NCBI GenBank assembly: GCA_021613535.1
Contig: CP075493.1
Span: forward strand, 17,980,001-18,044,000
Direction: 5' to 3'
Source of the DNA: Adineta vaga
Lineage: Eukaryota > Animalia > Rotifera
DNA length: 64,000 nucleotides
Under the pieces are notes generated by a model that searched no databases, had not been told where the DNA came from, and saw nothing but the letters and a program-made list of their open reading frames with translations. This document shows, piece after piece, positions 1,230-42,600 of the stretch (position 1 is its first letter; the number at the start of each line of letters is the position of its first letter). The position numbers and the translations under genes were made by a program.

Positions 1230-1497
1230 TAATTTAACGGGATCGAGCCGCAACAAGTTTGCTTCGATTGAAACATGAATAAGGTTCAGACAAAAAAGAA
1301 TCATGGTCCCGTCAGATCTGAATCCATCGATATCATAAACCCATACCATTGTAGTATCCACTTAACTGTATTTAACTATACGATGAATGTTGGATCAAAG
1401 GCGACAGACAATCATTTTTGCAGTGCGATCGACCATGATCATGCTTCTTCTTCTTCTTCTCATTTGTTCTTTTTCATCGTCGCCATCGTCGTCGTAG

Positions 1498-4400
1498 CAC
1501 CAGCATCCTTTGCTCAAGCTCGTATCTGGCTCGATGAACGACTTCGATTCGATCCAGACCATCCACAAGTGGCTATCTACAATATGCCTTTCGTCTATCG
1601 TCTTTCTCCACACGACACTCTCTCGATTCAACAACTTCATCATGCTCTACAACTTGTTGTCAACAAACATCCATCACTTCATACAGCACTCGTCTTTGAT
1701 TCTGACAAACATCAACTCATTCAAAGAATTCTTTCTCACAAAGATAACAACAACGACAACAGAACTCTCTTCTCCTTTACTCAAAGTACTTATGAAACAG
1801 ATGAAGAACTCCATGATATCTTACATGATGAACGAAGAAACACGCAACATTTCGATCTCGATCATGGTCTTGTCTTTCGATGTCATCTCGTACATTACAA
1901 AGAGATTATCCCATCGAATGATCTTCTTTCTCATCAACATCTTCTCATCTTTAGTTTTCATCATGCTTTGTTTGATTTTCTATCGATGAACATCTTTCTT
2001 CATGATCTCAATCAAGCATATACCACAAGTCAATTATCCACTGATGATGACTATACTACTCTTCGTTATTTCGATTGTATGTTATCCTAGCTTCTCATGT
2101 GTACTTTTCTTCTCTACCACATTTTCTTCTCTATTATATTCAGATGCTGCCATCGAACAACAACTGTCAATGACTGGTGCACAGATGTTCTGGCAGGATA
2201 CACTTCATGGTTGTCAACTCGATCAACCTCTTTCCTTACCCTATGATCGACATCGTCTTTCGAATGAACATCGAACTGGTCGTGGAACATCGATTTCCTT
2301 CGATCTTGGTCAACATCTGTCACATGACCTTGTCACTTATGCATCATCAAATCATATCGAACTAGAACATCTAGCTCTTGCAACCTACTATCTCTTCTTA
2401 TTCAAACTGACCAATGGAGAACAAGATCTATGTATTGGAATGAATACACATGGTCGATATCGAAATGAACTTCACTCAATCATTGGCATGTTTGTCAATG
2501 CTATACCAGTACGATGTCAACTAGATTCTTGTTGGTCTTTTGCTCAACTACTTGAACATATTCGATCGATGATAGTCAACTGTAGAAAATATTCATATTA
2601 TCCACTTCAACGTATTCTCTCTCAATATCCTCATCTCTCACATCCTGCATTTCTCGATACATCATTCGAATTTATCTCATCATCATCATTATCGATGGGA
2701 AAAGATGATCGAAATGAGATTATGATTGGTGATAGTCGACTTTCTCTCCTATCTTTCGTTACGAATATCAATGAAGATGAAGTGATGAACAAGTTTGATT
2801 TCATTCTCAGGATTGATCATCATCTGATGACAAATGAACTGTCATGCACCCTTTCTGCATCCAACGATTTGTTCAATGTAGAAACTATCTTCCAGATGGC
2901 ACAAAGATTTCACACAGTAGTCCAACAACTATTCATATCTGTTGATACAAGCATGAGGAAACTACTTTCTGAACAATCATTGATGTTGAACAATGAAAGA
3001 TTACTCATACAATCAATCAATCATACACAAACATCTTTTCCTCCCGTGAAGTGTATTCATCATGAGTTTGTATGTCAAGTGATAAGACATCCACAGAAAC
3101 TAGCTGTTGAACTCGATGATCAATCGTTGACATATGCTGAACTGTTGCACTATGTGCAACTATTATCGACACGTCTTCTAAGTGATTATAACATCCTTCC
3201 AGGTGAAGTGATTTGTCAATGTGTGGAGAGAAGCATATCAATGGTAAGTAGTTGATCAAAGACATGTGAATGTGAAGTAGAGATTGTTGTTGTTGTTGTT
3301 GTGTGGATGCATAGGTGATTGGAATGATGGCCATCGAAATGGTAGGTGGTGTTTATTGTCCATTATCACCTCGAGATCCTCAACATAGACTTCATGCACT
3401 CCTACAACAAACACAAGCTCGTCTAGTTCTTGTTCATTGGTTAACAGACAAGTTTCACGATGCAATGGCTTCACTTGATATTAATATCATCTCCTTTGCG
3501 AATAATATGCGTCAGGCTGTTGATGTTCATCGTTGGGATGATGTCATAGTTACTCCCAGTCATGTGGCCTATATCATTTTCACTAGTGGTTCAACTGGAA
3601 CACCCAAGGCGGTTCGTTGAATTTTAGTCAAATGACATCTATGACTGTATAATTCAATATTTCATTTCAGGTCCAAGTTCGGCATAGAAACTTCCTTGCT
3701 TGTATGCATGGTTTGAGATTGACTGATACGTTCAATACCAACGATACAGTCGTACAAATGGCACGATGTTCATTTGATGTTCATCTTCAAGAAATACTTG
3801 GTATCTTGACATGCGGAGCAACACTGGTGATGCTTCATCCTCGAGGAACTCTAGATTTAGAATATCTGTCACACATCATGCATGAGAAACAAATCACATA
3901 CCTGCATGCGGTGCCAACTTTACTCCAGAGTTTCTTCACTTTTCTCGAAAGCTCTCACATTTGTTATGTGGTGAAGTATGTTAGATCACTGTGCTGTGGC
4001 GGTGAGTGCCGAATGAATCACGTTTCTTGCTAGCTCCATTTAACTTGTTAATTCTCTGTAGGCGAACCTTTTCTCGTTCGATTCATTCACTTGGTCAATA
4101 GTGTCTGTATATCAAACTGTCTAATCTGGAACCTTTATGGTCCAGCAGAAATGACTATAGATTCTACACTTTTTCGTATAGATGTTATATCAAAACCTGC
4201 TGCTATCGCAATCGGGAAACCGCTTCCTGGCTACCAATGTATGATTCTGCATCCATATTCACAGGCATCTTTGATAAATGAAGAAGGTGAACTGTGCGTA
4301 GGAGGCGTAGGTGTGTTTGTTGGATATCTTGGACGAGATGATCTCACAGCCAAGGCACTCATCGAAATTGATGGTGAACTATTCTATCGAACAGGTGACC

Positions 4401-6660
4401 TCGTTCGAATGGATCATCAAGGTTTTCTTCATTACATTGGTCGACAAGATCATCAAGTCAAACTTCGAGGACAACGTATCGAACTAGGTGAGATCGAACA
4501 ATGTCTACTCAACATAGCATCATCCATCTCTGCATGTGTTGTCATCAAATGGAATGGTGATCATCTCGTGGCTTATGTTCAATGTTCTCATAACATACAC
4601 GAACAGCAACTGAGAGAACATTGTCAATCTCATCTTCCACCACATATGATTCCATCGTTCTTCGTCATCCTCGAACAACTACCTCTGAATGTCAATGGAA
4701 AGATCGATCGAAAACGGCTTCCTTCACCCGATGTCTCGCATCTGTCTTCATCAGCACATCATACGAATGACGACAATAATGAATTCTCACAACCAACCAA
4801 TGACATCGAACAGATCATTCATGACATGTGGTGTGATATTCTTCATCAAAAACAGATCTCCATCAGCACCAGTCTTTTCACCATCGGTGGTCATTCTCTC
4901 CTAGTCATGCAACTCTTTCATCGATACAAGATCGACTTTCATCTAGAATCGAGTTCTTCCTTTTCCATCTCTACTTTTTTTCAACATCCAACCATCAAAG
5001 AACATGCTCATCTCATTCATCAGACTCGCAACATCCACACCGAAGATGTCGATCATCATCAATGGCTCCCACTACATGTCACTCGAGGTAGTTTACATCA
5101 TGTATTTGTCTTCATCATCCACTCCCTTTTCTGTTTGTGTTCTAGCAAGAGCATCCTATGCACAGGAACGTATCTTCTTAGATGAACACATTCGTTTCTC
5201 CTCATCCACAAATACCACCCATTATCGTATTCATCATAATATCTATGTCATTCCATTATTGTATCGTCTCTCATCTTCTCATTCTCATCTTTCAATCTCA
5301 AGACTACGTTATGCACTGCATAGTCTCATCATCAGACACAACACTCTTCGAACAGCACTCTACCTAGATGATGTCGATGGTAGTATTGTACAAGAATGCT
5401 TCGATCAATCTCGCATTAGCAATGATATGATATCATGTCGATTTATTGTTCTTGATCTTCACAACAATAACGATAAGGATTGCGAGCGACAGGAGATTGT
5501 CGAGGATATACTCAATCAAGTGGATCTCTTTGATCTATCTAAAGGACATGTCATCAATTGTCATCTTCTTCTCGGACATCATCCTTCTCCAGAGGATGAT
5601 GATTTGTTGAATGAAAACGATTGGATCTTATTTACTCTCCATCATGCAGCATTTGATGGAGCATCCACATCGATCTTTCTTCGTGATCTTGCTCTTGCTT
5701 ATGATCAAGATGAGAACTTCTTGGTTGAGACTAATGCATTGCAATACATCGACTATTCTGTACATGAACATTGCATGGATATGACATTATCTCGACAATT
5801 CTGGCATGATCAACTGCAAGGATATGATCTGCAAAGTCGACTAGCATTGCCGGTTGATCGACATCGTGCTTCAGCTGATCAGCGCTCTGGACTGGCGTCA
5901 TCTATTCAAGTGACACTCGATGATGACATATGTACATCCTTTCTTCACTATGCATCATCACATCATCTCACTCTCTTTCAACTTGGCTTAGCTACATTCT
6001 ATGCATTTCTCTTTCGACTAACTCATGGTCACAGTGATCTATGTGTATCTTCGATTAATGCTAATCGATATCGAAATGAACTTGTCAATATGATAGGCAT
6101 GTTTGTGTCAACATTACCATATCGTCTTCACATCGATGATCATCAATGGTCCTTTGGTGAACTTGTCCGACATGTGCAAGAGAAATGTGTATCTATTCTA
6201 GAACATTCTCATTATCCATTACAAGAACTCTTCTCTCACTTTCATGTCAATCAATCGAATGTTGGATTTCTCGAAACGGTGTTTGATCTAATACATGTGT
6301 CTCCTGAACAAACACAGTTATCTTTGGGTGAAACAAACTTAGAACAAATATCATCAGACATATCATATCGAATGGCGAAATTTGATATCATGTTCACATT
6401 GGTTTATGATCGAACATGGCATGATGAGCGATTATCATGCAGTTTTGTCTGTTCACAAGATTTGTTTGATCAGGCATCCGTTACACTTCTAAGTCAAAGA
6501 CTAGTACACTTCTATCGGCAGCTGTTCTTATCTGATGGCGGTGGTGGTAGAATGGAGAGTTGGTCATTACCTTTATGTGATCTAGTTCTCATTCTACCGG
6601 AAGAAGCTAGAGAAATAGAAGACATTGTGTTTTGTCCACAACTACATGTGATAGATGAAG
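1498..6660 (+). CDS. NRPS unit 1 (C1-A-T-C2); exons 1498-2076, 2144-3243, 3315-3611, 3671-4001, 4062-5087, 5146-6660
   Basis: GT-AG introns of 58-71 nt restore split motifs (RYFD|YAA, TPKA|VQV, CCG|GE). Spliced length is 4848 nt = 1616 codons. A-domain code read by eye against GrsA numbering: DVQHCGLIDK. Confidence 0.9.
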
Positions 6661-9600
6661 GTATGTGTGATTGTTCGATGACTTTTGTTCAAATATGCAC
6701 ATGGATATCGGAGAAGATGCGAACTGTCTGTAGAGAAGTGTGCGAATATGTAAGAATCAACATGATACTTGAGAATGACATCTGATAAATGCTAAGAAAA
6801 CGATGATATTAATAGATTATTTGTAGAAACTTTGCTGTCTAGCGGTTTAGCAGTAATTGGACTATTTCCTCAGTTGAGTGTTGTAGAGTGACGAGCAGTT
6901 TTTACTTCTGAAACATTTTCTTTCGTATTAAGTGTAATTCATGAGAGTTTCTCTTGTCCTTTCTACTTATGCACATAAGTATAGGCTAAACATATTTCAC
7001 AAGTGTATTCGTAAGAGGAAGACTGTCTGAAATGTTTCTGTCGTCGGCTACAAGATGCTATGCGTTTGGATGAGTGTCCCTCAGTGTGAATGGGGTTACA
7101 CGCATGGAATAGACCCAGTTCGTATTTTGATGCGTTCTAGCAGGGAATTCGATTCGTTTTGCGCTTCTCTTCATGCATACAGAGGAGAACTAGTCGGTAG
7201 TTTTATCTACCTTCCTGGCTTTGTTTTCTGGTAAGAAGCGGAAATGATTTTGATCAGAGACAGAACTACTTATTATAAGATTACAAAAAACTACACATTA
7301 ATCGCAAAACCATGATAAAAATAGTCATCTACAAACGGTACAGTGTGATTCGATGAAAGCTGGTATTATATAGTGAACTGAAATAAGAAGACAGGCCAGA
7401 GACTATCTGCGTAGTGTGATGGATTAAAAGAGCGAATTGAAAAACAAAAGAAGGATATCGAGCACCAAGGATGAAAAGCCACATCTATATAGGTGATAGC
7501 AACAAGTATCTTAATATACACATTTCAGTGTAAGATGTGTTGATCATAAGTCATATGATTGTTTTGTTTCCTTGCTATCCTCAACTAAATACTTCATTGT
7601 TCCACACGCGCATTTTCCTGGATCTTTGTCTTTGTTTTCTTTCTTTCTCATTTCTATGTACACCAGTACAAACACACCTGTTCACCTCCAATCGACAATC
7701 CCTCTTCCACTTGAGCGACTAGTCTAAGACATGACATCGAACCGACAGAACATACAACATTAGAATAAAAACTTCCATCACGGAAGTTCCATGTGGCAGC
7801 TTCCTACCAACCAATCATACAATGAAAACACAAGCGAAATTCAGTTAGATACCGTCTGATTCGACACATCAGCATGAAAATATTGTGAAGTAAACTGAGA
7901 AGCAAGTAGAATTGAACGAGATCACAGTGGGTTTCATTCTTGAAAATCAGAATCGTCGGCAACACAAATGCCAAGGAATAATTTATCGGGAACAAATTTA
8001 TTGACCGGTTAAACAGATGAAATGATCAGTAATAAAATGGATAAATGATCAGTTCGAAGTTTGAATGATCGGTGCTTAGAATAGCAGTAAATAATATGAA
8101 AATGATCAGTCTATAATATGAACCATCCGTAAAGACATCATATTTATAACAGTAAAAAGTAGCAATTTGACAAGTAAAAAATCCAAATTTGATTAGTAAA
8201 TAATGCATGTTGTACCAACAGAAAAAAAAGATCGATCTGTAAGACACACCCGAGCACGAGACGAAGAATCTAATTGAAGCCGTCTAAAATTCGAATCACT
8301 GCAGCATCAAAGCTGGTTTAGCTTTTGCTGGCCGGCCACTCTTTCGTTTTTCACCGATCGGCACTGTCTTGGCTGGTGATGGTGGTCTGCAGTACTTCAA
8401 GCGAATAGCCATCCCAACAACGTGCTTGCAAACATAGTTTTTCAAAAAGGCCGGGCAGTTGCATTTTGATTTCTTCCAGTCTGTATCATTCGGCATTTCT
8501 AAACACCATATATCATAGGATTTCTTGAACTGATTAAAGGTAGTCCATTTTCTATTGATATATTTATTTACATCAGTTTGTGTAATATCTTGTATATCAC
8601 GAGCTGGTATATAATGTTTTTGAACCATCATTCGGATAGAAGATTACATCTGTTGATGACTTGTCCATTGATATGAAGAAGTCCATAGCTTTAAACTTAT
8701 CGTCGCTTCTATGACAAAAACTTTTGCATTTATTGAAGTGGAATCACGTTCTATTGACCAGTTGTGAACAATCCTTGAAGCTATTGCTAAAAATCTCGAT
8801 AAGACATAACGTTCTTGGAAAGTCCCTTCATCTTTTATTGTCTTGTTGGCTGTCTCCAGGATTTTGTTCGTAATCGGTGTATATAACTGGATACCTTCGT
8901 ACCAACCGTTATTGGATTCAATCCATTCTTTGTCGAAATACGACAGATTTTCTTGTTTCTGGTACGTCCTCCTCTACTAAATCACTTTCGTATGAAGCAC
9001 CTCGTGCAGCTTCCATCGGTTTTACTTGTTAGCACCGAGATGGACGTGAAAGAAAGGATAGAAATAACGAATATGATGGCTGGATTTATAGTTGAATCTC
9101 GCGATTACAGAGAAATAAAAAAAAGTAGCCATCAGTCACTGTACGACTTATTGCAATTTCTACAGTGATCCTTGCATATAATCTCCTAATAATGTATTTT
9201 ATTTACTGATTATCAAATTAATTAACTATACAATCTCTTGAACTACTGTTCCTTTATATTGTTTACTGACAGTTCAACTTCTTTACTGATCATTCATCCA
9301 ATTAACTGATTTTGAAATATTTCATCTCACTGATCATACCATATTTTTCTACTGATAAACTAAATCCATGCCTAATTTAACGGGATCGAGCCGCAACAAG
9401 TTTGCTTCGATTGAAACATGAATAAGGTTCAGACAAAAAAGAATCATGGTCCCGTCAGATCTGAATCCATCGATATCATAAACCCATACCATTGTAGTAT
9501 CCACTTAACTGTATTTAACTATACGATGAATGTTGGATCAAAGGCGACAGACAATCATTTTTGCAGTGCGATCGACCATGATCATGCTTCTTCTTCTTCT

Positions 9601-12600
9601 TCTTCTTCTCATTTGTTCTTTTTCATCGTCGCCATCGTCGTCGTAGCACCAGCATCCTTTGCTCAAGCTCGTATCTGGCTCGATGAACGACTTCGATTCG
9701 ATCCAGACCATCCACAAGTGGCTATCTACAATATGCCTTTCGTCTATCGTCTTTCTCCACACGACACTCTCTCGATTCAACAACTTCATCATGCTCTACA
9801 ACTTGTTGTCAACAAACATCCATCACTTCATACAGCACTCGTCTTTGATTCTGACAAACATCAACTCATTCAAAGAATTCTTTCTCACAAAGATAACAAC
9901 AACGACAACAGAACTCTCTTCTCCTTTACTCAAAGTACTTATGAAACAGATGAAGAACTCCATGATATCTTACATGATGAACGAAGAAACACGCAACATT
10001 TCGATCTCGATCATGGTCTTGTCTTTCGATGTCATCTCGTACATTACAAAGAGATTATCCCATCGAATGATCTTCTTTCTCATCAACATCTTCTCATCTT
10101 TAGTTTTCATCATGCTTTGTTTGATTTTCTATCGATGAACATCTTTCTTCATGATCTCAATCAAGCATATACCACAAGTCAATTATCCACTGATGATGAC
10201 TATACTACTCTTCGTTATTTCGATTGTATGTTATCCTAGCTTCTCATGTGTACTTTTCTTCTCTACCACATTTTCTTCTCTATTATATTCAGATGCTGCC
10301 ATCGAACAACAACTGTCAATGACTGGTGCACAGATGTTCTGGCAGGATACACTTCATGGTTGTCAACTCGATCAACCTCTTTCCTTACCCTATGATCGAC
10401 ATCGTCTTTCGAATGAACATCGAACTGGTCGTGGAACATCGATTTCCTTCGATCTTGGTCAACATCTGTCACATGACCTTGTCACTTATGCATCATCAAA
10501 TCATATCGAACTAGAACATCTAGCTCTTGCAACCTACTATCTCTTCTTATTCAAACTGACCAATGGAGAACAAGATCTATGTATTGGAATGAATACACAT
10601 GGTCGATATCGAAATGAACTTCACTCAATCATTGGCATGTTTGTCAATGCTATACCAGTACGATGTCAACTAGATTCTTGTTGGTCTTTTGCTCAACTAC
10701 TTGAACATATTCGATCGATGATAGTCAACTGTAGAAAATATTCATATTATCCACTTCAACGTATTCTCTCTCAATATCCTCATCTCTCACATCCTGCATT
10801 TCTCGATACATCATTCGAATTTATCTCATCATCATCATTATCGATGGGAAAAGATGATCGAAATGAGATTATGATTGGTGATAGTCGACTTTCTCTCCTA
10901 TCTTTCGTTACGAATATCAATGAAGATGAAGTGATGAACAAGTTTGATTTCATTCTCAGGATTGATCATCATCTGATGACAAATGAACTGTCATGCACCC
11001 TTTCTGCATCCAACGATTTGTTCAATGTAGAAACTATCTTCCAGATGGCACAAAGATTTCACACAGTAGTCCAACAACTATTCATATCTGTTGATACAAG
11101 CATGAGGAAACTACTTTCTGAACAATCATTGATGTTGAACAATGAAAGATTACTCATACAATCAATCAATCATACACAAACATCTTTTCCTCCCGTGAAG
11201 TGTATTCATCATGAGTTTGTATGTCAAGTGATAAGACATCCACAGAAACTAGCTGTTGAACTCGATGATCAATCGTTGACATATGCTGAACTGTTGCACT
11301 ATGTGCAACTATTATCGACACGTCTTCTAAGTGATTATAACATCCTTCCAGGTGAAGTGATTTGTCAATGTGTGGAGAGAAGCATATCAATGGTAAGTAG
11401 TTGATCAAAGACATGTGAATGTGAAGTAGAGATTGTTGTTGTTGTTGTTGTGGATGCATAGGTGATTGGAATGATGGCCATCGAAATGGTAGGTGGTGTT
11501 TATTGTCCATTATCACCTCGAGATCCTCAACATAGACTTCATGCACTCCTACAACAAACACAAGCTCGTCTAGTTCTTGTTCATTGGTTAACAGCAGACA
11601 AGTTTCACGATGCAATGGCTTCACTTGATATTAATATCATCTCCTTTGCGAATAATATGCGTCAGGCTGTTGATGTTCATCGTTGGGATGATGTCATAGT
11701 TACTCCCAGTCATGTGGCCTATATCATTTTCACTAGTGGTTCAACTGGAACACCCAAGGCGGTTCGTTGAATTTTAGTCAAATGACATCTATGACTGTAT
11801 AATTCAATATTTCATTTCAGGTCCAAGTTCGGCATAGAAACTTCCTTGCTTGTATGCATGGTTTGAGATTGACTGATACGTTCAATACCAACGATACAGT
11901 CGTACAAATGGCACGATGTTCATTCGATATCCATGTTCAAGAAATACTTGGTATCTTGACATGCGGAGCAACACTGGTAATGCTTCATCCTCGAGGAACT
12001 CTAGATTTAGAATATCTGTCACACATCATGCATGAGAAACAAATCACATACCTGCATGCGGTGCCAACTTTACTCCAGAGTTTCTTCGCTTTTCTCGGAC
12101 ATTCTAACGTTTGCTCTGTTCTTCAAGGTCTTCGATCACTGTGTAGTAGCGGTGGGTGAATGATAGTAAAAGTTGAGTTGCTTATTTATAGCCTATAACA
12201 TTTTGTTGCAGGTGAACCGTTTCCTCTTAGACTTGCTGACTTGGTCAAAAATGTCGGGATATCAAACTGTAATGTGTGGAATCTATACGGTCCGGCGGAG
12301 ATCACTATTGATTGTACCTTGTTTCATGCAGACGTTATTTCGAAACCTGCTGCTATCGCAATCGGGAAACCGCTTCCTGGCTACCAATGTATGATTCTGC
12401 ATCCATATTCACAGGCATCTTTGATAAATGAAGAAGGTGAACTGTGCGTAGGAGGCGTAGGTGTGTTTGTTGGATATCTTGGACGAGATGATCTCACAGC
12501 CAAGGCACTCATCGAAATTGATGGTGAACTATTCTATCGAACAGGTGACCTCGTTCGAATGGATCATCAAGGTTTTCTTCATTACATTGGTCGACAAGAT

Positions 12601-30600: not shown

Positions 30601-33600
30601 CAAGGTATATTCATGTCTATTGTTTGACAACTCAGGATGCTGTTCGGTGTCGGTGTACATAAGGTTCTTTCTTGATGAGTACCTTGGATTGGATCCATTC
30701 CATTCTTTGTCGAAATAAGACTTCTTTTGATTTTCAACAGATGAAAGCTTGATCATAAGTAAGATAAAAGTTTTCTTACCTAGGCTATTATGTTTCGGTT
30801 TAGATTCACTTTGGAATGACAGATGGACGTGAAAGTATATATACGAAATAATATGTAGATGTCATTCAATTGTCGATCTTCTTGCTCTGAGAAAGATATG
30901 ATATATCATGGTATTATCTTCTACCATATGAAATACGGCTTTGATAACATTGCAGATGATTTCATAGAAGATTATCATACATTTTGTCTACTGATTATCA
31001 TATAGAAATCATAAAGCTACGTGTTCCTTTTATTACTGATGCATTTAATCAAATCGAATAATCCGATTCCAGTACATTCTCTCATCTAATGGAAGCGACA
31101 GAGTAATATGGCATTTTTCAGGGAGTGTGGGAAACTCTGAGGATTGTTTTTATGTATTTCCAGCTGATCATCTTTCATCGTACAGATCTTAACTGAAATA
31201 GGTCAAATATTGCTATTTCTACTGATATTTTCTTACTGCCTACTATCGACGTACTCACTTGTGTTTTATCTTGATTGCAGTGAGTCTCCCTGCTTCGAGA
31301 AACAATAGATCAATTTTGAAGATGGGTCCAAGTGATTCTTCCCGTCAGATGCTATTGAGTCATAAGGTGTAAAGACATACCATTGTAGTATCCCATAAGC
31401 TCGGTATACGATGAATGTTGGATCAAAGGCGACAGACAATCATTTTACAGTATTAAACACCATGTATGCTTCTTCTTCTTCTTCTTCTCATTTGTGCATC
31501 GTCGCCATCGTCGTAGCACCAGCATCCTTTGCTCAAGCTCGAATTTGGCTCGATGAACGACTTCGATTCGATCCACACAAGCCACAAGTGAGCATCTCCA
31601 ACATCCCCTTCGTCTATCGTCTCCCACTAGCCAACACTCTCTCCGTTCGACAACTTCATCGTGCTCTACAGCTCGTCGTCAACAAACATCCATCACTTCA
31701 CACAGCACTCATCTTCGACCCACACACAAATGAACTCATCCAAAGAATCATCTCTCACAAACATGACGACCACGACGACGGCGAAACTCTCTTCTCCTTT
31801 ACTCAAAGTACTTATGAAACAGATGAAGAACTCCATGATATCTTACATGATGAACGAAGAAACACGCAACATTTCGATCTCGATCATGGTCTTGTCTTTC
31901 GATGTCATCTCGTACATTACAAAGAGATTATTCCATCGAATGATCTTCTCTCTCACCAAGATCTCCTGATCTTCAATTTTCATCGTGCTCTCTTTGATTT
32001 TCTATCGATGAACATCTTTCTTCATGATCTCAATCAAGCATACACCACAGATCAACTATCAACCGCAACAACGAATGACACCATCACTCTACGCTATCTC
32101 GATTGTATGTCGACATATGCGTTGTTCTTTCCTCACTCATTCATCATTCTTGTGTGTTTGATTTAGATGCTGTCATCGAACATCAACTGTCAATGACTGG
32201 TGCACAGATGTTCTGGCAGGATACACTTCATGGTTGTCAACTCGATCAACCTCTTTCCTTACCCTATGATCGACATCGTCTTTCGAATGAACATCGAACT
32301 GGTCGTGGAACATCGATTTCCTTCGATCTTGGTCAACATCTGTCACATGACCTTGTCACTTATGCATCATCACATGACATCTCACTGCAACAGCTTACCT
32401 TTTCTCTGTATTTCACATTCCTGTTCAAGTTGACGAATGCACAAACGGATCTATGTGTTGGAATGAATGTCAGCAATCGATATCGAGATGAACTTCGATC
32501 CGTTGTTGGAATGTTTGAGAATATTATTCCATTGAGATGTCAACTCGATACACATTGGTGTTTCGCTCAACTGATGAATAATGTTCGAAAGATGATGACC
32601 AATGCAATGAAATATTCCTATTATCCTGTTGAACGTCTTCTATGTGATCAACATCTTCATCTTTCACATGCTACGTTTCACCATACAGCATTTGAATTTC
32701 TTTCATTATCATCATCGTTGTTGAAGAGGGTAGATGGTAAGAATGTAATCGAGATAGGTGGTAGTCGAATGTCTTTGATAGCATTATCAATGAAAATGAA
32801 TGAAGATCAAGATCAAGATGAAGTGATGAGTCAATGGGATCTCTCTCTTGTTCTTCATCATCATGATATTCAGTCGAATGGAGTGTCATGTGTGATTCAT
32901 GCATCCCTTGATTTATTCGATCGAGAAACACTGGTATTGATCTCACAACGATTTCATTCCTTCGTCCATCAACTACTCGTTTCTTCTGTTGACAATCAAA
33001 CAAACAGACCAATCTATGAACTATCGTTAACATTATTACATGAAAGATTACTCGCACAATCAGTGAATAACACCGAAGTCTCATACTCTCCCGTGATGTG
33101 TATTCATCATGAGTTTGTATGTCAAGTGATAAGACATCCACAGAAACTAGCTGTTGAACTCGATGATCAATCGTTGACATATGCTGAACTGTTGCACTAT
33201 GTGCAACTATTATCGACACGTCTTCTAAGTGATTATAACATCCTTCCAGGTGAAGTGATTTGTCAATGTGTGGAGAGAAGCATATCAATGGTAAGTAGTT
33301 GATCAAAGACATGTGAATGTGAAGTAGAGATTGTTGTTGGTGTTAATGAATAGGTGATTGGAATAATGGCAATTGAGATGATAGGTGGTGTTTATTGCCC
33401 ACTGTCACCTCGAGATCCTCCACATCGTCTTCATGCACTTCTGCAACAAACACAAGCTCGTCTAGTTCTTGTTCATTGGTTAACAGCAGACAAGTTTCAC
33501 GATGCAATGCCTTCACTTGATATTAATATCATCTCCTTTGCGAATAATATGCGTCAGGCTGTTGATGTTCATCGTTGGGATGATGTCATAGTTACTCCCA

Positions 33601-36600
33601 GTCATGTGGCCTATATCATTTTCACTAGTGGTTCAACTGGAACACCCAAGGCGGTTTGTTGAGTTACAGTGAAGTGGCATTTGTGCTCAGTTGTTTCGTT
33701 TCTCATTCTAGATACAAGTTCGACATACGAACTTTGTTAACTGTATGCATTCGTTGACATTCAATGGCACATTTTATGAAAATGATACGGCTATACAGAT
33801 GGCACGATGTTCATTTGACATTCATGTTCAAGAAATACTTGGTATCTTGACATATGGTGCCACCCTGGTGATGCTTCATCCTCGAGGAACTCTAGATTTA
33901 GAATATCTGTCACACATCATGCATGAGAAACAAATCACATACCTGCATGCGGTGCCAACTTTACTCCAGAGTCTGTTCGCCTTTCTCGATCGCTCACACA
34001 GCTCTTATGTCGTGAAGTATCTTCGATCAGTATGCAGTAGTGGTGAGCGGCTGATTAAATAATTTCAGTTCTATTCTGACATTCAATATCTGATCTATTA
34101 CAGGTGAACCTTTCCCGGTGAAATTGACCGATCTCATAGCAAAAGCTAGTACAGCAAACTGTAATGTATGGAATTTATATGGGCCAGCAGAAATAACTAT
34201 CGGTTGTACGCTCTTTCTTGTTAAAGCTACATCAAAGACTGATACAGTTCCGATCGGACAGTCACTTCCTAATTATGAATGTGTGGTTCTGGATGAACAT
34301 TCGCAAACGTCTTTGACAAATCAAGAAGGTGAATTGTTTGTCGGAGGTGTAGGTGTATTTGCTGGATATCTTGGACGTGATGATCTGACTGCCAGGGCAC
34401 TCATCGAAGTTAATGGTCGGTTATTCTATAGAACAGGTGATATCGTTCGAATAGATGACAGTGGATTGATTCATTACATTGGTCGACAAGATCATCAAGT
34501 CAAACTTCGAGGACAACGCATTGAACTTGGTGAAATCGAACGATGCCTGCTCAGCATCTCTACCATCTCTGCTTGTGTTGTCATCAAATGGAATGATGAT
34601 CATCTCGTGGCTTATGTTCAATGTTCTCATAACATACACGAACAGCAACTGAGAGAACATTGTCAATCTCATCTTCCACCACATATGATTCCATCGTTCT
34701 TCGTCATCCTCGAACAACTACCTCTGAATGTCAATGGAAAGATCGATCGAAAACGGCTTCCTTCACCCGATGTCTCGCATCTGTCTTCATCAGCACATCA
34801 TACGAATGACGACAATAATGAATTCTCACAACCAACCAATGACATCGAACAGATCATTCATGACATGTGGTGTGATATTCTTCATCAAAAACAGATCTCC
34901 ATCAGCACCAGTCTTTTCACCATCGGTGGTCATTCTCTCCTAGTCATGCAACTCTTTCATCGATACAAGATCGACTTTCATCTAGAATCGAGTTCTTCCT
35001 TTTCCATCTCTACTTTTTTTCAACATCCAACCATCAAAGAACATGCTCATCTCATTCATCAGACTCGCAACATCCACACCGAAGATGTCGATCATCATCA
35101 ATGGCTCCCACTACATGTCACTCGAGGTAGTTTACATCATGTATTTGTCTTCATCATCCACTCCCTTTTCTGTTTGTGTTCTAGCAAGAGCATCCTATGC
35201 ACAGGAACGTATCTTCTTAGATGAACACATTCGTTTCTCCTCATCCACAAATACCACCCATTATCGTATTCATCATAATATCTATGTCATTCCATTATTG
35301 TATCGTCTCTCATCTTCTCATTCTCATCTTTCAATCTCAAGACTACGTTATGCACTGCATAGTCTCATCATCAGACACAACACTCTTCGAACAGCACTCT
35401 ACCTAGATGATGTCGATGGTAGTATTGTACAAGAATGCTTCGATCAATCTCGCATTAGCAATGATATGATATCATGTCGATTTATTGTTCTTGATCTTCA
35501 CAACAATAACGATAAGGATTGCGAGCGACAGGAGATTGTCGAGGATATACTCAATCAAGTGGATCTCTTTGATCTATCTAAAGGACATGTCATCAATTGT
35601 CATCTTCTTCTCGGACATCATCCTTCTCCAGAGGATGATGATTTGTTGAATGAAAACGATTGGATCTTATTTACTCTCCATCATGCAGCATTTGATGGAG
35701 CATCCACATCGATCTTTCTTCGTGATCTTGCTCTTGCTTATGATCAAGATGAGAACTTCTTGGTTGAGACTAATGCATTGCAATACATCGACTATTCTGT
35801 ACATGAACATTGCATGGATATGACATTATCTCGACAATTCTGGCATGATCAACTGCAAGGATATGATCTGCAAAGTCGACTAGCATTGCCGGTTGATCGA
35901 CATCGTGCTTCAGCTGATCAGCGCTCTGGACTGGCGTCATCTATTCAAGTGACACTCGATGATGACATATGTACATCCTTTCTTCACTATGCATCATCAC
36001 ATCATCTCACTCTCTTTCAACTTGGCTTAGCTACATTCTATGCATTTCTCTTTCGACTAACTCATGGTCACAGTGATCTATGTGTATCTTCGATTAATGC
36101 TAATCGATATCGAAATGAACTTGTCAATATGATAGGCATGTTTGTGTCAACATTACCATATCGTCTTCACATCGATGATCATCAATGGTCCTTTGGTGAA
36201 CTTGTCCGACATGTGCAAGAGAAATGTGTATCTATTCTAGAACATTCTCATTATCCATTACAAGAACTCTTCTCTCACTTTCATGTCAATCAATCGAATG
36301 TTGGATTTCTCGAAACGGTGTTTGATCTAATACATGTGTCTCCTGAACAAACACAGTTATCTTTGGGTGAAACAAACTTAGAACAAATATCATCAGACAT
36401 ATCATATCGAATGGCGAAATTTGATATCATGTTCACATTGGTTTATGATCGAACATGGCATGATGAGCGATTATCATGCAGTTTTGTCTGTTCACAAGAT
36501 TTGTTTGATCAGGCATCCGTTACACTTCTAAGTCAAAGACTAGTACACTTCTATCGGCAGCTGTTCTTATCTGATGGCGGTGGTGGTAGAATGGAGAGTT

Positions 36601-39600
36601 GGTCATTACCTTTATGTGATCTAGTTCTCATTCTACCGGAAGAAGCTAGAGAAATAGAAGACATTGTGTTTTGTCCACAACTACATGTGATAGATGAAGG
36701 TATGTGTGATTGTTCGATGACTTTTGTTCAAATATGCACATGGATATCGGAGAAGATGCGAACTGTCTGTAGAGAAGTGTGCGAATATGTAAGAATCAAC
36801 ATGATACTTGAGAATGACATCTGATAAATGCTAAGAAAACGATGATATTAATAGATTATTTGTAGAAACTTTGCTGTCTAGCGGTTTAGCAGTAATTGGA
36901 CTATTTCCTCAGTTGAGTGTTGTAGAGTGACGAGCAGTTTTTACTTCTGAAACATTTTCTTTCGTATTAAGTGTAATTCATGAGAGTTTCTCTTGTCCTT
37001 TCTACTTATGCACATAAGTATAGGCTAAACATATTTCACAAGTGTATTCGTAAGAGGAAGACTGTCTGAAATGTTTCTGTCGTCGGCTACAAGATGCTAT
37101 GCGTTTGGATGAGTGTCCCTCAGTGTGAATGGGGTTACACGCATGGAATAGACCCAGTTCGTATTTTGATGCGTTCTAGCAGGGAATTCGATTCGTTTTG
37201 CGCTTCTCTTCATGCATACAGAGGAGAACTAGTCGGTAGTTTTATCTACCTTCCTGGCTTTGTTTTCTGGTAAGAAGCGGAAATGATTTTGATCAGAGAC
37301 AGAACTACTTATTATAAGATTACAAAAAACTACACATTAATCGCAAAACCATGATAAAAATAGTCATCTACAAACGGTACAGTGTGATTCGATGAAAGCT
37401 GGTATTATATAGTGAACTGAAATAAGAAGACAGGCCAGAGACTATCTGCGTAGTGTGATGGATTAAAAGAGCGAATTGAAAAACAAAAGAAGGATATCGA
37501 GCACCAAGGATGAAAAGCCACATCTATATAGGTGATAGCAACAAGTATCTTAATATACACATTTCAGTGTAAGATGTGTTGATCATAAGTCATATGATTG
37601 TTTTGTTTCCTTGCTATCCTCAACTAAATACTTCATTGTTCCACACGCGCATTTTCCTGGATCTTTGTCTTTGTTTTCTTTCTTTCTCATTTCTATGTAC
37701 ACCAGTACAAACACACCTGTTCACCTCCAATCGACAATCCCTCTTCCACTTGAGCGACTAGTCTAAGACATGACATCGAACCGACAGAACATACAACATT
37801 AGAATAAAAACTTCCATCACGGAAGTTCCATGTGGCAGCTTCCTACCAACCAATCATACAATGAAAACACAAGCGAAATTCAGTTAGATACCGTCTGATT
37901 CGACACATCAGCATGAAAATATTGTGAAGTAAACTGAGAAGCAAGTAGAATTGAACGAGATCACAGTGGGTTTCATTCTTGAAAATCAGAATCGTCGGCA
38001 ACACAAATGCCAAGGAATAATTTATCGGGAACAAATTTATTGACCGGTTAAACAGATGAAATGATCAGTAATAAAATGGATAAATGATCAGTTCGAAGTT
38101 TGAATGATCGGTGCTTAGAATAGCAGTAAATAATATGAAAATGATCAGTCTATAATATGAACCATCCGTAAAGACATCATATTTATAACAGTAAAAAGTA
38201 GCAATTTGACAAGTAAAAAATCCAAATTTGATTAGTAAATAATGCATGTTGTACCAACAGAAAAAAAAGATCGATCTGTAAGACACACCCGAGCACGAGA
38301 CGAAGAATCTAATTGAAGCCGTCTAAAATTCGAATCACTGCAGCATCAAAGCTGGTTTAGCTTTTGCTGGCCGGCCACTCTTTCGTTTTTCACCGATCGG
38401 CACTGTCTTGGCTGGTGATGGTGGTCTGCAGTACTTCAAGCGAATAGCCATCCCAACAACGTGCTTGCAAACATAGTTTTTCAAAAAGGCCGGGCAGTTG
38501 CATTTTGATTTCTTCCAGTCTGTATCATTCGGCATTTCTAAACACCATATATCATAGGATTTCTTGAACTGATTAAAGGTAGTCCATTTTCTATTGATAT
38601 ATTTATTTACATCAGTTTGTGTAATATCTTGTATATCACGAGCTGGTATATAATGTTTTTGAACCATCATTCGGATAGAAGATTACATCTGTTGATGACT
38701 TGTCCATTGATATGAAGAAGTCCATAGCTTTAAACTTATCGTCGCTTCTATGACAAAAACTTTTGCATTTATTGAAGTGGAATCACGTTCTATTGACCAG
38801 TTGTGAACAATCCTTGAAGCTATTGCTAAAAATCTCGATAAGACATAACGTTCTTGGAAAGTCCCTTCATCTTTTATTGTCTTGTTGGCTGTCTCCAGGA
38901 TTTTGTTCGTAATCGGTGTATATAACTGGATACCTTCGTACCAACCGTTATTGGATTCAATCCATTCTTTGTCGAAATACGACAGATTTTCTTGTTTCTG
39001 GTACGTCCTCCTCTACTAAATCACTTTCGTATGAAGCACCTCGTGCAGCTTCCATCGGTTTTACTTGTTAGCACCGAGATGGACGTGAAAGAAAGGATAG
39101 AAATAACGAATATGATGGCTGGATTTATAGTTGAATCTCGCGATTACAGAGAAATAAAAAAAAGTAGCCATCAGTCACTGTACGACTTATTGCAATTTCT
39201 ACAGTGATCCTTGCATATAATCTCCTAATAATGTATTTTATTTACTGATTATCAAATTAATTAACTATACAATCTCTTGAACTACTGTTCCTTTATATTG
39301 TTTACTGACAGTTCAACTTCTTTACTGATCATTCATCCAATTAACTGATTTTGAAATATTTCATCTCACTGATCATACCATATTTTCTACTGATAAACTA
39401 AATCCATGCCTAATTTAACGGGATCGAGCCGCAACAAGTTTGCTTCGATTGAAACATGAATAAGGTTCAGACAAAAAAGAATCATGGTCCCGTCAGATCT
39501 GAATCCATCGATATCATAAACCCATACCATTGTAGTATCCACTTAACTGTATTTAACTATACGATGAATGTTGGATCAAAGGCGACAGACAATCATTTTT

Positions 39601-42600
39601 GCAGTGCGATCGACCATGATCATGCTTCTTCTTCTTCTTCTTCTTCTCATTTGTTCTTTTTCATCGTCGCCATCGTCGTCGTAGCACCAGCATCCTTTGC
39701 TCAAGCTCGTATCTGGCTCGATGAACGACTTCGATTCGATCCAGACCATCCACAAGTGGCTATCTACAATATGCCTTTCGTCTATCGTCTTTCTCCACAC
39801 GACACTCTCTCGATTCAACAACTTCATCATGCTCTACAACTTGTTGTCAACAAACATCCATCACTTCATACAGCACTCGTCTTTGATTCTGACAAACATC
39901 AACTCATTCAAAGAATTCTTTCTCACAAAGATAACAACAACGACAACAGAACTCTCTTCTCCTTTACTCAAAGTACTTATGAAACAGATGAAGAACTCCA
40001 TGATATCTTACATGATGAACGAAGAAACACGCAACATTTCGATCTCGATCATGGTCTTGTCTTTCGATGTCATCTCGTACATTACAAAGAGATTATCCCA
40101 TCGAATGATCTTCTTTCTCATCAACATCTTCTCATCTTTAGTTTTCATCATGCTTTGTTTGATTTTCTATCGATGAACATCTTTCTTCATGATCTCAATC
40201 AAGCATATACCACAAGTCAATTATCCACTGATGATGACTATACTACTCTTCGTTATTTCGATTGTATGTTATCCTAGCTTCTCATGTGTACTTTTCTTCT
40301 CTACCACATTTTCTTCTCTATTATATTCAGATGCTGCCATCGAACAACAACTGTCAATGACTGGTGCACAGATGTTCTGGCAGGATACACTTCATGGTTG
40401 TCAACTCGATCAACCTCTTTCCTTACCCTATGATCGACATCGTCTTTCGAATGAACATCGAACTGGTCGTGGAACATCGATTTCCTTCGATCTTGGTCAA
40501 CATCTGTCACATGACCTTGTCACTTATGCATCATCAAATCATATCGAACTAGAACATCTAGCTCTTGCAACCTACTATCTCTTCTTATTCAAACTGACCA
40601 ATGGAGAACAAGATCTATGTATTGGAATGAATACACATGGTCGATATCGAAATGAACTTCACTCAATCATTGGCATGTTTGTCAATGCTATACCAGTACG
40701 ATGTCAACTAGATTCTTGTTGGTCTTTTGCTCAACTACTTGAACATATTCGATCGATGATAGTCAACTGTAGAAAATATTCATATTATCCACTTCAACGT
40801 ATTCTCTCTCAATATCCTCATCTCTCACATCCTGCATTTCTCGATACATCATTCGAATTTATCTCATCATCATCATTATCGATGGGAAAAGATGATCGAA
40901 ATGAGATTATGATTGGTGATAGTCGACTTTCTCTCCTATCTTTCGTTACGAATATCAATGAAGATGAAGTGATGAACAAGTTTGATTTCATTCTCAGGAT
41001 TGATCATCATCTGATGACAAATGAACTGTCATGCACCCTTTCTGCATCCAACGATTTGTTCAATGTAGAAACTATCTTCCAGATGGCACAAAGATTTCAC
41101 ACAGTAGTCCAACAACTATTCATATCTGTTGATACAAGCATGAGGAAACTACTTTCTGAACAATCATTGATGTTGAACAATGAAAGATTACTCATACAAT
41201 CAATCAATCATACACAAACATCTTTTCCTCCCGTGAAGTGTATTCATCATGAGTTTGTATGTCAAGTGATAAGACATCCACAGAAACTAGCTGTTGAACT
41301 CGATGATCAATCGTTGACATATGCTGAACTGTTGCACTATGTGCAACTATTATCGACACGTCTTCTAAGTGATTATAACATCCTTCCAGGTGAAGTGATT
41401 TGTCAATGTGTGGAGAGAAGCATATCAATGGTAAGTAGTTGATCAAAGACATGTGAATGTGAAGTAGAGATTGTTGTTGTTGTTGTTGTGGATGCATAGG
41501 TGATTGGAATGATGGCCATCGAAATGGTAGGTGGTGTTTATTGTCCATTATCACCTCGAGATCCTCAACATAGACTTCATGCACTCCTACAACAAACACA
41601 AGCTCGTCTAGTTCTTGTTCATTGGTTAACAGCAGACAAGTTTCACGATGCAATGGCTTCACTTGATATTAATATCATCTCCTTTGCGAATAATATGCGT
41701 CAGGCTGTTGATGTTCATCGTTGGGATGATGTCATAGTTACTCCCAGTCATGTGGCCTATATCATTTTCACTAGTGGTTCAACGGGAACGCCTAAAGCAG
41801 TATGTCACCGGATCCGATCATTAAATCAATTCTCTCATTATAATCGTTTTTTGTTAGATTCTAGTAACACATTCGAATCTGATGACCTTTACTCAATCGT
41901 TGGTTCAAATTCAGATTCTTCATCGTAATGATAATGTTGTACAGCTCGCTTCTTCGTCATTTGATGCCCATATACTGGAAATTCTTTGTTCTCTGGTTTG
42001 CGGAGCAGCAGTGATTATGCTGCATCCAGATGGGAATATGAATTTTGGCTATTTTACTGAGACACTGCGAGACAAGGAAGTCACACATTTGACAGCTGTT
42101 CCAACGTTTCTCGACCATTTGTGTAAATTTATCCAGCAGAATATGTCTAGATTGTTTACATTAATAAGAAATGTTTGTTGTGTTGGTGAGTAACCGGAGA
42201 GTATGTGAAACAATTTGAGATCACATCCGTCTTGTATATAGGAGAGACCCTCTCGCCGATCTTAGTTCTGACTTTGATGCATCACATCATGGAACCTTGT
42301 TGTATTTGGAACTTATATGGTCCAGCAGAGGCTACACTAGGAAGCACATATTATCTGTTTGATCCGACTTATAATACAGCTAACGTATCTATTGGTAAAC
42401 CCTTTCCTGGTTACATATGTTTACTGGTGGATCATTTCTTACAACCTGTTGCAGTCTATCAAGAAGGTGAATTGTATGTAGGAGGAGTAGGTATCTTTGC
42501 CGGATATCTTGGACGCGATGATCTCACAGCCAAAGCACTAATTGATATTGATGGTGAAGTCTTCTATCGAACAGGTGATCTCGTTCGAATGGATGACAGT

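Follow-up and report, generated by a model that had tools for sequence, protein, structure and literature searches.

How can consecutive modules of one peptide-synthetase gene remain almost identical along most of their length, introns included, and still carry different substrate pockets? This question is raised by a 64-kb window of the bdelloid rotifer Adineta vaga (64,000 nucleotides, the whole stretch analysed here, with positions counted from its first letter). A preliminary description had proposed that its adenylation (A) domains swap pockets on a nearly invariant scaffold, generating diverse peptide chemistry in an animal. The gene does belong to an animal, A. vaga. It is a giant spliced peptide-synthetase (NRPS) gene with at least seven tandem modules, and the window spans its 3' two-thirds. 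Among the clusters that Nowell et al. (2024; PMC11258130) list, it is 'Cluster 1.9' (Chrom_1 17942949..18035224; 13,683 aa; '3 frameshifts'; subtelomeric).

Architecture of the gene

Each module has the form C1-A-T-C2, and consecutive modules are linked via introns of 1-3 kb, so that the transcript repeats T-C2-C1-A. Exons were modelled on GT-AG sites and anchored on A-domain motifs; database searches were run with single exons, which were joined only for frame checks, dN/dS and trees. On the exon ORFs of several units, Pfam families PF00668, PF00501, PF13193 and PF00550 gave Condensation, AMP-binding and PP-binding domains in series, and the PDB matches of the module domains include LgrA, TycC, SrfA-C and PheA. 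Motifs A1-A10 and the carrier motif GGHSL were placed in u2 and aligned across all seven units. A search for HHxxxD found HHAAFDG in C2 and HHALFDF, without the final G, in C1. All GT-AG sites are intact in every unit, and intron positions are kept in every unit and every paralog. Unit u0 was found 1.5-6.6 kb upstream of the window; the main features within the window are the following.

1498-6660, + strand: module u1 (C1-A-T-C2); Pfam Condensation, AMP-binding and PP-binding; GT-AG models; open frame; code DVQHCGLIDK
1498-2076, 2144-3243, 3315-3611, 3671-4001, 4062-5087 and 5146-6660, + strand: exons of u1, from GT-AG models
3775-3829, + strand: small patch of 5 u1/u2 substitutions; code position 236, read as V in u1 and as I in u2, falls inside it
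3938-4192, + strand: main u1/u2 divergence island of 255 bp, running from the last part of exon 4 across intron 4002-4061 into the first part of exon 5
5088-5145, + strand: intron of u1, confirmed by RNA-type contigs of two studies
6661-9646, + strand: inter-unit intron of 2,986 bp (GT..AG), joining C2 of one unit to the next C1
8296-8631 (copy at 154-489), - strand: SWIM zinc-finger ORF within the 6661-9646 intron, by Pfam SWIM match
9647-14809, + strand: module u2; code DIQHCSLIDK; C2 out of frame after the loss of 1 bp at 13773
17796-22882, + strand: module u3; code DALTCVLLGK; open frame; Pfam Condensation; intron 20297-20352
25250-30409, + strand: module u4; code DTQDIGSIGK; C2 out of frame after two additional bases, AT, at 29835-29836
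31517-36699, + strand: module u5; code DIQHCSLIGK; open frame
39685-44111, + strand: module u6 (C1-A-T) with a putative terminal release region; A domain equal to that of u3 (DALTCVLLGK); ORF end at 44111

The modules are co-linear on one transcript. RNA-type contigs supply the joints across 6661-9646 and 5088-5145, and conserved GT-AG sites point to the remaining introns between units. For the 2,986-bp intron, the splice joint (6658>9645, cut +2) is found in three RNA-type runs from two studies, and RNA depth inside the intron is zero, whereas a DNA run covers it. Near-identical copies of this intron (99.9-100%) lie at about -1442..1497, 14810-17795 and 36700-39684. In u6, a run of six T (43136-43141) interrupts the reading frame of the T domain, and Pfam gave no match on the two terminal exon pieces, searched separately.

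Two other layouts were considered and rejected. The first, in which each 8.1-kb unit would be its own C-A-T-C gene followed by a 2.6-kb spacer, is ruled out by the RNA-type contigs that splice 6661-9646. The second, in which C2 would be an epimerisation domain (a T-E-C-A layout), is ruled out by the nearest solved relatives of C2, the condensation domains of Txo2, TycC, TomB and LgrA; an E-domain structure is absent among the 34 structure matches of C2. The antiSMASH calls that PMC11258130 gives for Cluster 1.9 are all LCL.

Homogenised scaffold and old pocket islands

The contrast between scaffold and pocket is sharpest between u1 (1-8142) and u2 (8143-16291) in a MAFFT alignment of the six window units. 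They differ in 112 columns, and all 89 substitutions fall at 3775-3785 (4), 3829 (1) and 3938-4192 (84, along with 10 gap columns). These sites span 418 bp, which is 5% of the unit; within 3938-4192, 94 of the 255 columns differ. Outside that span only five indels separate the units, at 1201, 1443 (6 bp), 3300-3301, 3445 (3 bp) and 5624 (1 bp). The near-identity over 8 kb reported earlier is therefore upheld, while the scattered SNPs said to accompany it are absent. The patches do cover code positions 236 and 299-331, as had been noted (positions 299, 301, 322, 330 and 331 fall in the larger one), and they include the whole 60-bp intron 4002-4061 as well.

The same division runs through the array. 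Scaffold exons and introns are 99.9-100% identical among units (100% for scaffold introns), whereas introns inside the islands are 57-69% identical (68% in the u1-u2 patch). In that patch dS is 1.03, dN 0.27 and omega 0.26, against a dS of 0 in the flanks; in other island pairs dS is saturated, and islands show a dN/dS of about 0.25 (0.2-0.3). Borders are sharp: u2 and u4 match without a difference for 2,132 bp, and identity then drops to 63% for 1,149 bp. Pairwise diversity is highest, at 0.43-0.51, from position 278 to motif A5, where the seven units carry 6 haplotypes. The islands are thus old, constrained and retained sequence, and both the homogenisation of C, T and intron sequence and the retention of pocket segments, as first proposed, are borne out. 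Hypermutation or positive selection in the u1/u2 patch was also considered and is rejected, given a dN/dS of 0.26 and an intron that has diverged just as far.

Breaks between island and scaffold lie after A2 (11566), at A3 (11726), at A5 (27886) and between A8 and A9 (12703). Compared with deeper paralogs, the u2 island extends over 11726-12703, from A3 to between A8 and A9. The unique island of u4 covers 27169-27885, and from A5 (27886) on u4 is 98.6-99.7% identical to u5. Units u3 and u6 are the same from 16292 to 20980 (motif A10), with 3 differences in 4,689 bp; downstream of 20980, u3 continues with a T domain of its own and another C domain (21419-22882). Deep divergence stops near A6, and dS is 0.1-0.27 across A6-A8. 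The divergent segment thus reaches approximately from A2/A3 to A5/A6 and spares the C-A linker as well as the small C-terminal A subdomain, as in an A-core unit. The non-homogenised islands therefore coincide with the pocket-forming A3-A6 region, in agreement with the preliminary description and with bacterial NRPSs (PMC8097286; PMC9205934; PMC11428043).

Specificity codes

Codes were read from the exon models in a register set by a phmmer match to PheA (1amu), in which residue 22 of exon 5 corresponds to chain residue 320, yielding L322, I330 and D331. The six codes obtained for u1 to u6 are exactly those previously given by eye, and u0 adds a sixth distinct code, DIQHCILIGK. The earlier count of five codes is correct as a count of sequences, but only about three pocket classes are clearly different, since four of the codes are variants of D[IV]QHC[GSI]LI[DG]K. 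Of the 10 positions in this pattern, 6-7 are the same in DVWHLSLVDK, a code for Ser/Dha (PMC12283262). No literature match was found for any of the six codes, including DTQDIGSIGK and DALTCVLLGK. In amino-acid identity, the patches of u1, u2, u5 and u0 are about equally distant from one another (49-69%) and from a paralog on another chromosome (52-62%). Judged by their codes, the modules may activate distinct substrates.

Origin of the mosaic

The most probable reading of this mosaic is that gene conversion between modules homogenises the scaffold while old pockets are retained. Non-allelic recombination (gene conversion and/or unequal exchange) would hold most of each unit at 99.9-100%, acting on C1, the ends of the A domain (A1-A3 and A8-A10), T and C2 together with every intron that they contain. 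Conversion tracts would end at the conserved motifs A2/A3, A5, A8/A9 and A10, leaving each module an old pocket island from about A3 to A6, which between u1 and u2 would have shrunk to 255 bp around positions 299-331. Islands may persist through selection against conversions that overwrite the pocket, through divergence too great for heteroduplex formation, or through both. Selection on pockets and a neutral barrier to homology would leave the same pattern.

The u5 C1 domain shows conversion in progress. It belongs to a second, older lineage that is 21% divergent and sister to the C5-end paralog (support 98), and it contains three perfect tracts in common with the majority C1 type: 31785-31931, 32184-32372 and 33098-33290 (147, 189 and 193 bp). 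Against the 21% background, a run longer than 61 bp occurred in none of 10,000 shuffles. Sister arrays repeat the block pattern at 91-99.6% identity, and in family-wide trees, from which the paralogous arrays at C3 19.9 Mb and C5 10.2 Mb are excluded, C1 domains group by array and pockets by code type. AU tests, whose clade groups were defined with the trees already in view, rejected array-monophyly for the C3a pockets (p=3e-38) and type-grouping for the C1 domains (p=1.5e-4 and 5e-5); a single clade of the window array's own pockets was not rejected (p=0.215).

The swapping that the preliminary description favoured would require that one module was recently duplicated in series and that islands were pasted in later from other A domains. 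We regard this as improbable, although it has a bacterial precedent in A-core substitution with diverse breakpoints (PMC8097286; PMC9205934), and the patch of u1 diverges more than any other in its group. Four whole-genome DNA searches of the 100.8-Mb haploid assembly found no donor for the u1 patch, the u2 patch, the u3/u6 core or the u4 core; beyond the islands themselves (plus u6 for u3), they returned weak matches at 65-87% identity, and the best non-self matches reached 65-81% over fragments. Local BLAST against four paralogous regions likewise found no donor. Signs of exchange are confined to the array: u3 and u6 place one pocket in two different downstream contexts, and the tract common to u4 and u5 from A5 on includes u5 positions 330 and 331. 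These observations lend some support to exchanged pockets. Against swapping, the partly converted u5 C1 shows homogenisation acting directly on the scaffold, and the scaffolds of sister arrays are homogenised per array, whereas the arrays retain the same pocket types. The associated idea of a diversity generator is also weakly supported, as the documented process removes differences and preserves old pockets, and no new specificity is seen arising.

Integrity of the gene and the assembly

The reference carries four frameshifts of 1-2 bp, in u0 exon 2, u2 exon 6, u4 exon 6 and the u6 T domain, three of them inside the window. The gene would be broken if they were real, and its function is therefore unproven. 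They raise the possibility of a decaying array, in which divergence alone blocks conversion, chemistry is under no selection and no full-length synthetase is made. The entry of '3 frameshifts' as a putative defect in the published curation (PMC11258130) points the same way, as does the lack of RNA contig coverage over the u1 pocket. Decay nevertheless appears quite unlikely, somewhat more so than swapping: island dN/dS is 0.2-0.3, paralogs on other chromosomes keep the same codes, and splice sites are intact throughout. Furthermore, RNA-type contigs and an independent DNA contig carry an intact C2 at both C2 frameshift sites, and differences between copies that consist of indels only fit ONT consensus error (PMC8494291).

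Assembly reliability was judged from the assembly and the contigs of public runs. Because the scaffold differences between copies are all indels, ONT assembly or polishing may have rounded scaffold identity of 99.x% up to 100%. In an independent DNA run of 2015, the u1 patch forms a separate contig (3908-4222, the patch plus 30 nt on each side) at a word depth of about 50, against about 345 over the common C2 region. That the near-identical flanks or the array itself arose from consensus-building over a repeat is very improbable: the assembly is ONT-based and short-read polished (PMC8494291), its scaffold copies differ by indels only and depth ratios of about 6.8x for C2 and 3.3x for the large intron mismatch the 5 and 4 assembled copies, but the 2015 run holds an unbroken 1,909-bp C2 contig at about 7x single-copy depth beside the contig exactly over the u1 patch, runs of seven studies contain the stretch (14 runs with at least half of its words), adjacent segments at 100% and 60% identity cannot arise from such an artefact, and the sister arrays repeat the pattern.

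Implications

Tentatively, ongoing conversion between modules in bdelloid subtelomeres together with selection on product chemistry might have standardised the scaffold of these animal-encoded NRPSs, leaving a single island of 0.25-1 kb in each module to specify the residue. The arrays would then be a natural exchange-unit library, with seven identical C1/T/C2 contexts beside six pockets and a smallest island of approximately residues 290-343 plus position 236. Where conversion breaks off inside the pocket, as at A5 in u4/u5, new code combinations would occasionally result, so that an asexual animal would also gain peptide diversity. Having been acquired horizontally and having gained introns, the NRPS genes of this animal appear to follow the bacterial rule that the scaffold is interchangeable and homogenised and the A core carries identity.

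The array offers NRPS engineering an unusually clean natural experiment: six different pockets adjoin acceptor C domains, carrier domains and linkers that do not vary, with natural exchange borders marked at A3, A5, A6-A8 and A10 and a minimal unit of 255 bp. If the enzyme is active, this arrangement argues against strong C-domain gatekeeping for these substrates. For bdelloid biology, a defence-related gene family near the telomeres here yields base-pair-level evidence of non-allelic gene conversion, in tracts about 150-200 bp long. Annotators should be aware that frameshifts published as 'defects' of such arrays may stem from errors in the long-read consensus.

Comparison with known systems

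The mechanism is already known from bacteria; the present case is an animal gene. Nowell et al. (2024; PMC11258130) treat the same locus and list domains only; term searches of the main text and supplements returned no module-by-module identity, specificity codes, splice evidence for the 3-kb introns or recombination analysis.

Recombination of A-core subdomains in bacterial NRPSs was described by Baunach et al. (2021; PMC8097286) and Booth et al. (2022; PMC9205934), who also cite Crusemann (2013) and Kries (2015) on these subdomains. As in those systems, the variable unit of A. vaga lies inside the A core, from about A2/A3 to A5/A6; the C-A linker, the small C-terminal A subdomain and the A-T interface are constant; breakpoints are diverse and fall at conserved motifs; and identical C domains stand beside different pockets. 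In contrast, bacteria import from identifiable donor modules between orthologous clusters, whereas no donor was found in A. vaga, where the dominant signal is homogenisation of everything but the island. The A. vaga gene is also nuclear and its spliceosomal introns are homogenised or retained along with the exons.

The unit-and-linker NRPSs of Ca. Endobryopsis kahalalidifaciens (PMC11428043) provide a second parallel. There too, intense recombination erases covariation outside functional units, a 'specificity unit' extends from A3 to (extended) A6, and conserved linkers are the sites of recombination. However, the symbiont is bacterial and has about 20 separate pathways, whereas the A. vaga events occur within one gene and its sister arrays; identity in A. 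vaga is far higher (100%), and a tandem C2-C1 pair replaces the chirality unit with E domains.

Finally, module homogenisation in assembly lines has been noted (PMC9205934), and gene conversion has been reported in A. vaga (PMC8494291). Like tandem repeats under concerted evolution, the array shows non-allelic conversion leading to near-identity, non-coding sequence included, and short tracts in a divergent copy. It differs in that homogenisation is broken, in each repeat, by small functional islands of saturated divergence.

Array layout and gene structure

Self-BLAST of the window places a tandem NRPS array on the forward strand from position 1 to about 44,100, with a period of 8,142-8,149 bp. 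Six units (u1-u6) lie inside the window, and a seventh, u0, lies directly upstream, where positions are negative. Beyond u0 are a module with the code DVRSCGMID and a Cys-like adenylation (A) domain (DLYN..LIW). In every unit, Pfam searches on ORFs identify Condensation, AMP-binding, AMP-binding_C, PP-binding and a second Condensation domain, the two condensation-type domains being termed C1 and C2 and the carrier T. The gene is animal-encoded, lies in a subtelomeric position some 100 kb short of the contig end, and is already catalogued. In assembly Av20 (100.8 Mb, six contigs), CP075493, CP075492 and CP075494 are Chrom_1, Chrom_3 and Chrom_5 (Supplementary Data 9, Nowell et al., 2024, PMC11258130). 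The same curation lists the locus as region 1.9 (17942949..18035224, + strand, 13,683 aa, "3 frameshifts") and calls every C domain in it LCL; no sub-domain-level analysis of the locus was found in the term-searched parts of its main text and supplement.

Contigs from three RNA-type runs, belonging to two studies, support two splice joints within 3701-9700, namely 5085>5144 (58 bp) and 6658>9645 (2,986 bp), both of which read GT..AG when cut two places rightward. The long intron has no RNA coverage at all, and a DNA run covers it whole. Because these contigs splice C2 straight to the C1 of the next unit, the units are not separate genes, and the repeat is T-C2-C1-A. Other introns were placed by GT-AG rules plus reading frame, yielding the following exons for u1; putative inter-unit introns further along are 22883-25249 and 30410-31516.

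Exons of u1
1498-2076, forward strand, exon
2144-3243, forward strand, exon
3315-3611, forward strand, exon
3671-4001, forward strand, exon
4062-5087, forward strand, exon
5146-6660, forward strand, exon

All splice sites are kept across all units, and all the paralogous modules located at other loci of the genome retain the exon-4 unit. Database searches were run on single exons, joined spliced proteins being used only in local scripts.

A tandem condensation-type pair follows every carrier domain (5146-6660 joined to 9647-11392, and likewise in every unit), and RNA contigs verify the junction. The C2 motif is the canonical HHAAFDG; that of C1, HHALFDF, is without the final G. Assignment of C2 as an epimerisation domain was rejected, as its closest solved structures are condensation domains. 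C1 and C2 both look like C rather than E domains, and, given the Ser-like A codes described below, a modifying (e.g., dehydrating) role for one of the two is conceivable.

Divergent pockets in a homogenised scaffold

Alignment of the six window units with MAFFT reveals a mosaic in which kilobase blocks that are 99.9-100% identical border directly on segments of 50-78% identity. Between u1 and u2, all 89 substitutions are confined to 3775-3785, 3829 and 3938-4192, in agreement with the patches located by the preliminary description; elsewhere in the 8.1 kb, the two are separated by just five small indels. Similarly, u2 and u4 have 0 differences over the 2,132 bp of C1, then an A core at 63% identity over 1,149 bp, then 4 differences over 2,225 bp, and u3 and u6 differ at 3 sites in 4,689 bp. 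Across the seven units, mean pairwise diversity peaks at 0.43-0.51 from position 278 to core motif A5 and falls to 0 in several scaffold windows.

These divergent islands hold the substrate pocket. Specificity codes were taken from motif-anchored alignments, and phmmer aligned exon 5 with PheA (1amu), pairing query residue 22 with chain residue 320, which backs positions 322, 330 and 331. The six codes previously read by eye for the window units were right.

Specificity codes of the units
u0, DIQHCILIGK
u1, DVQHCGLIDK
u2, DIQHCSLIDK
u3 and u6, DALTCVLLGK
u4, DTQDIGSIGK
u5, DIQHCSLIGK

Four of the codes are variants of one theme, so that clearly different pocket classes number about three. The D[IV]QHC[GS]LIDK codes match the Ser/Dha code DVWHLSLVDK (as listed in PMC12283262) at 6-7 of 10 positions, a resemblance that offers a lead rather than a substrate prediction. 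None of the listed codes occurs in the searchable literature. Within the genome, DIQHCSLID recurs in one of the chromosome-3 sister arrays (C3b), and the chromosome-5 end has DIQHCSLIG.

Age of the islands and the direction of exchange

The u1/u2 patch has a dS of 1.03, a dN of 0.27 and an omega of 0.26; for most other unit pairs, dS in the island region is saturated, and flank dS is 0. Identity is 57-69% for the island introns (one after A3, one at codon 301/302) and 100% for the scaffold introns. The high dS, low omega and diverged introns point to islands of old sequence under purifying selection, within a scaffold that has no measurable divergence. On the same grounds, hypermutation of the islands was dismissed. 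Within the patch, u0, u1, u2 and u5 are mutually 49-69% identical in amino acids and stand equally distant (52-62%) from the NRPS paralog at the chromosome-5 end, the flanks of which have only 78% identity to the window array.

Whole-genome searches of the haploid assembly, with the patches of u1 and u2 and the cores of u3/u6 and u4 as queries, gave no other copy of any of these four islands, which leaves import from a resident donor without support. Scaffold conversion, by contrast with such import, can be seen in progress in the C1 of u5. This domain belongs to a second C1 lineage, sister to the chromosome-5 paralog (support 98), and differs by 21% from the six remaining C1 copies; it nevertheless carries three zero-difference tracts of 147, 189 and 193 bp, and the longest run in 10,000 shuffles never exceeded 61 bp. 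Breakpoints between units lie at or beside conserved motifs.

Breakpoints in the A domain
At A3, u2/u3
After A2, u2/u4
At A5, u4/u5
At A8-A9, several pairs
At A10, u3 = u6 vs the rest

Since the A5 breakpoint puts positions 330 and 331 of u5 on a tract common to u4, conversion is able to reach into the pocket.

Sister arrays on chromosome 3

The same block pattern recurs, at 91-99.6% identity, in a pair of sister arrays on this chromosome. In trees of 27 modules, from a family of roughly 40 and with the C3 19.9-Mb and C5 10.2-Mb arrays left out, C1 domains group strictly by array and pockets group by code type across arrays, DVMACGIVV and DIQYCGLLQ, for example, being common to both chromosome-3 arrays. 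With groups named after the trees were seen, AU tests rejected both a pocket tree monophyletic by array (p=3e-38) and a C1 tree grouped by type (p=1.5e-4 and 5e-5); for the window array alone, the AU result was not significant (p=0.215). DVMACGIVV and DIQYCGLLQ each occur twice per array (C3:235001-335000 and C3:1575001-1655000), and C1 is homogenised within each. The shared chromosome-3 pockets and the C1/pocket incongruence fit an old whole-array duplication followed by separate concerted evolution.

Assembly check and copy number

Av20 was assembled from ONT data with NextDenovo, then polished using short reads and PacBio data (as described in PMC8494291), and the 100% identity figure refers to this ONT-based polished reference. 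Four 1-2-bp shifts interrupt the frame in the reference, versus three in the published curation (PMC11258130).

Frameshifts in the reference
-4956, u0 exon 2
13773, u2
29835-29836, u4
43136-43141, u6, T6 run

Each is the sole difference from otherwise identical sister copies, and independent DNA and RNA contigs have an intact frame at both C2 sites. Long-read consensus error is suspected, and ONT assembly or polishing may have caused both the indel-only scaffold differences and the four frameshifts. The mosaic itself is real. In this check, which is based on assembled contigs, one contig of an independent 2015 DNA run covers exactly the u1 patch and a 30-nt margin at either end (depth ~50), and another, 1,909 bp long, runs unbroken over C2 with intact frame (depth ~345). 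Over 3701-9700, word depth in that run was ~345 at C2 against ~50 at the single-copy u1 patch, which suggests ~6.8 C2 copies where the assembly has 5; the large intron, assembled in 4 copies, had ~165. C2-bearing units may be more numerous in the true array, or in one haplotype, than in the assembly.

Other elements in and near the gene

Several further elements accompany the array.

154-489 and 8296-8631, with copies in each 2,986-bp intron, reverse strand, SWIM zinc-finger ORF, 111 aa (Pfam)
23479-24033, within the u3-to-u4 intron, 555-bp palindrome, 90% identity to its own reverse complement
44161-44826 and 45826-46491, just downstream of the gene end, 666-bp inverted repeat pair, 99.85% identity
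48168-49529, 49955-52021 and 62973-63938, reverse strand, downstream ORFs

The SWIM ORF sits inside the large intron, was duplicated along with the unit and is probably a transposase remnant accounting for the intron's size. The u3-to-u4 intron is unlike the other inter-unit introns. The 666-bp repeats may be terminal repeats of a mobile element. Of the downstream ORFs, the first is a weak reverse-transcriptase ORF, the second encodes 688 aa and has no Pfam match, and the third is OTU-protease-like; they lie in an AT-rich region (26-30% GC) that is typical subtelomeric mobile-element territory.

Probable concerted evolution around retained pockets

The most likely reading is that inter-module gene conversion keeps the module scaffold in concerted evolution and that the old islands of the A core are retained, through either selection or a homology barrier. 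Of the preliminary proposal, homogenisation around retained pocket segments holds, given the old islands and a flank dS of 0; pocket swapping from donors finds no backing in the genome searches, and a role as diversity generator is not shown. The mechanism matches the one reported for bacterial NRPSs (PMC8097286, PMC9205934, PMC11428043); the A. vaga array adds an unusual host and an unusually fine resolution.
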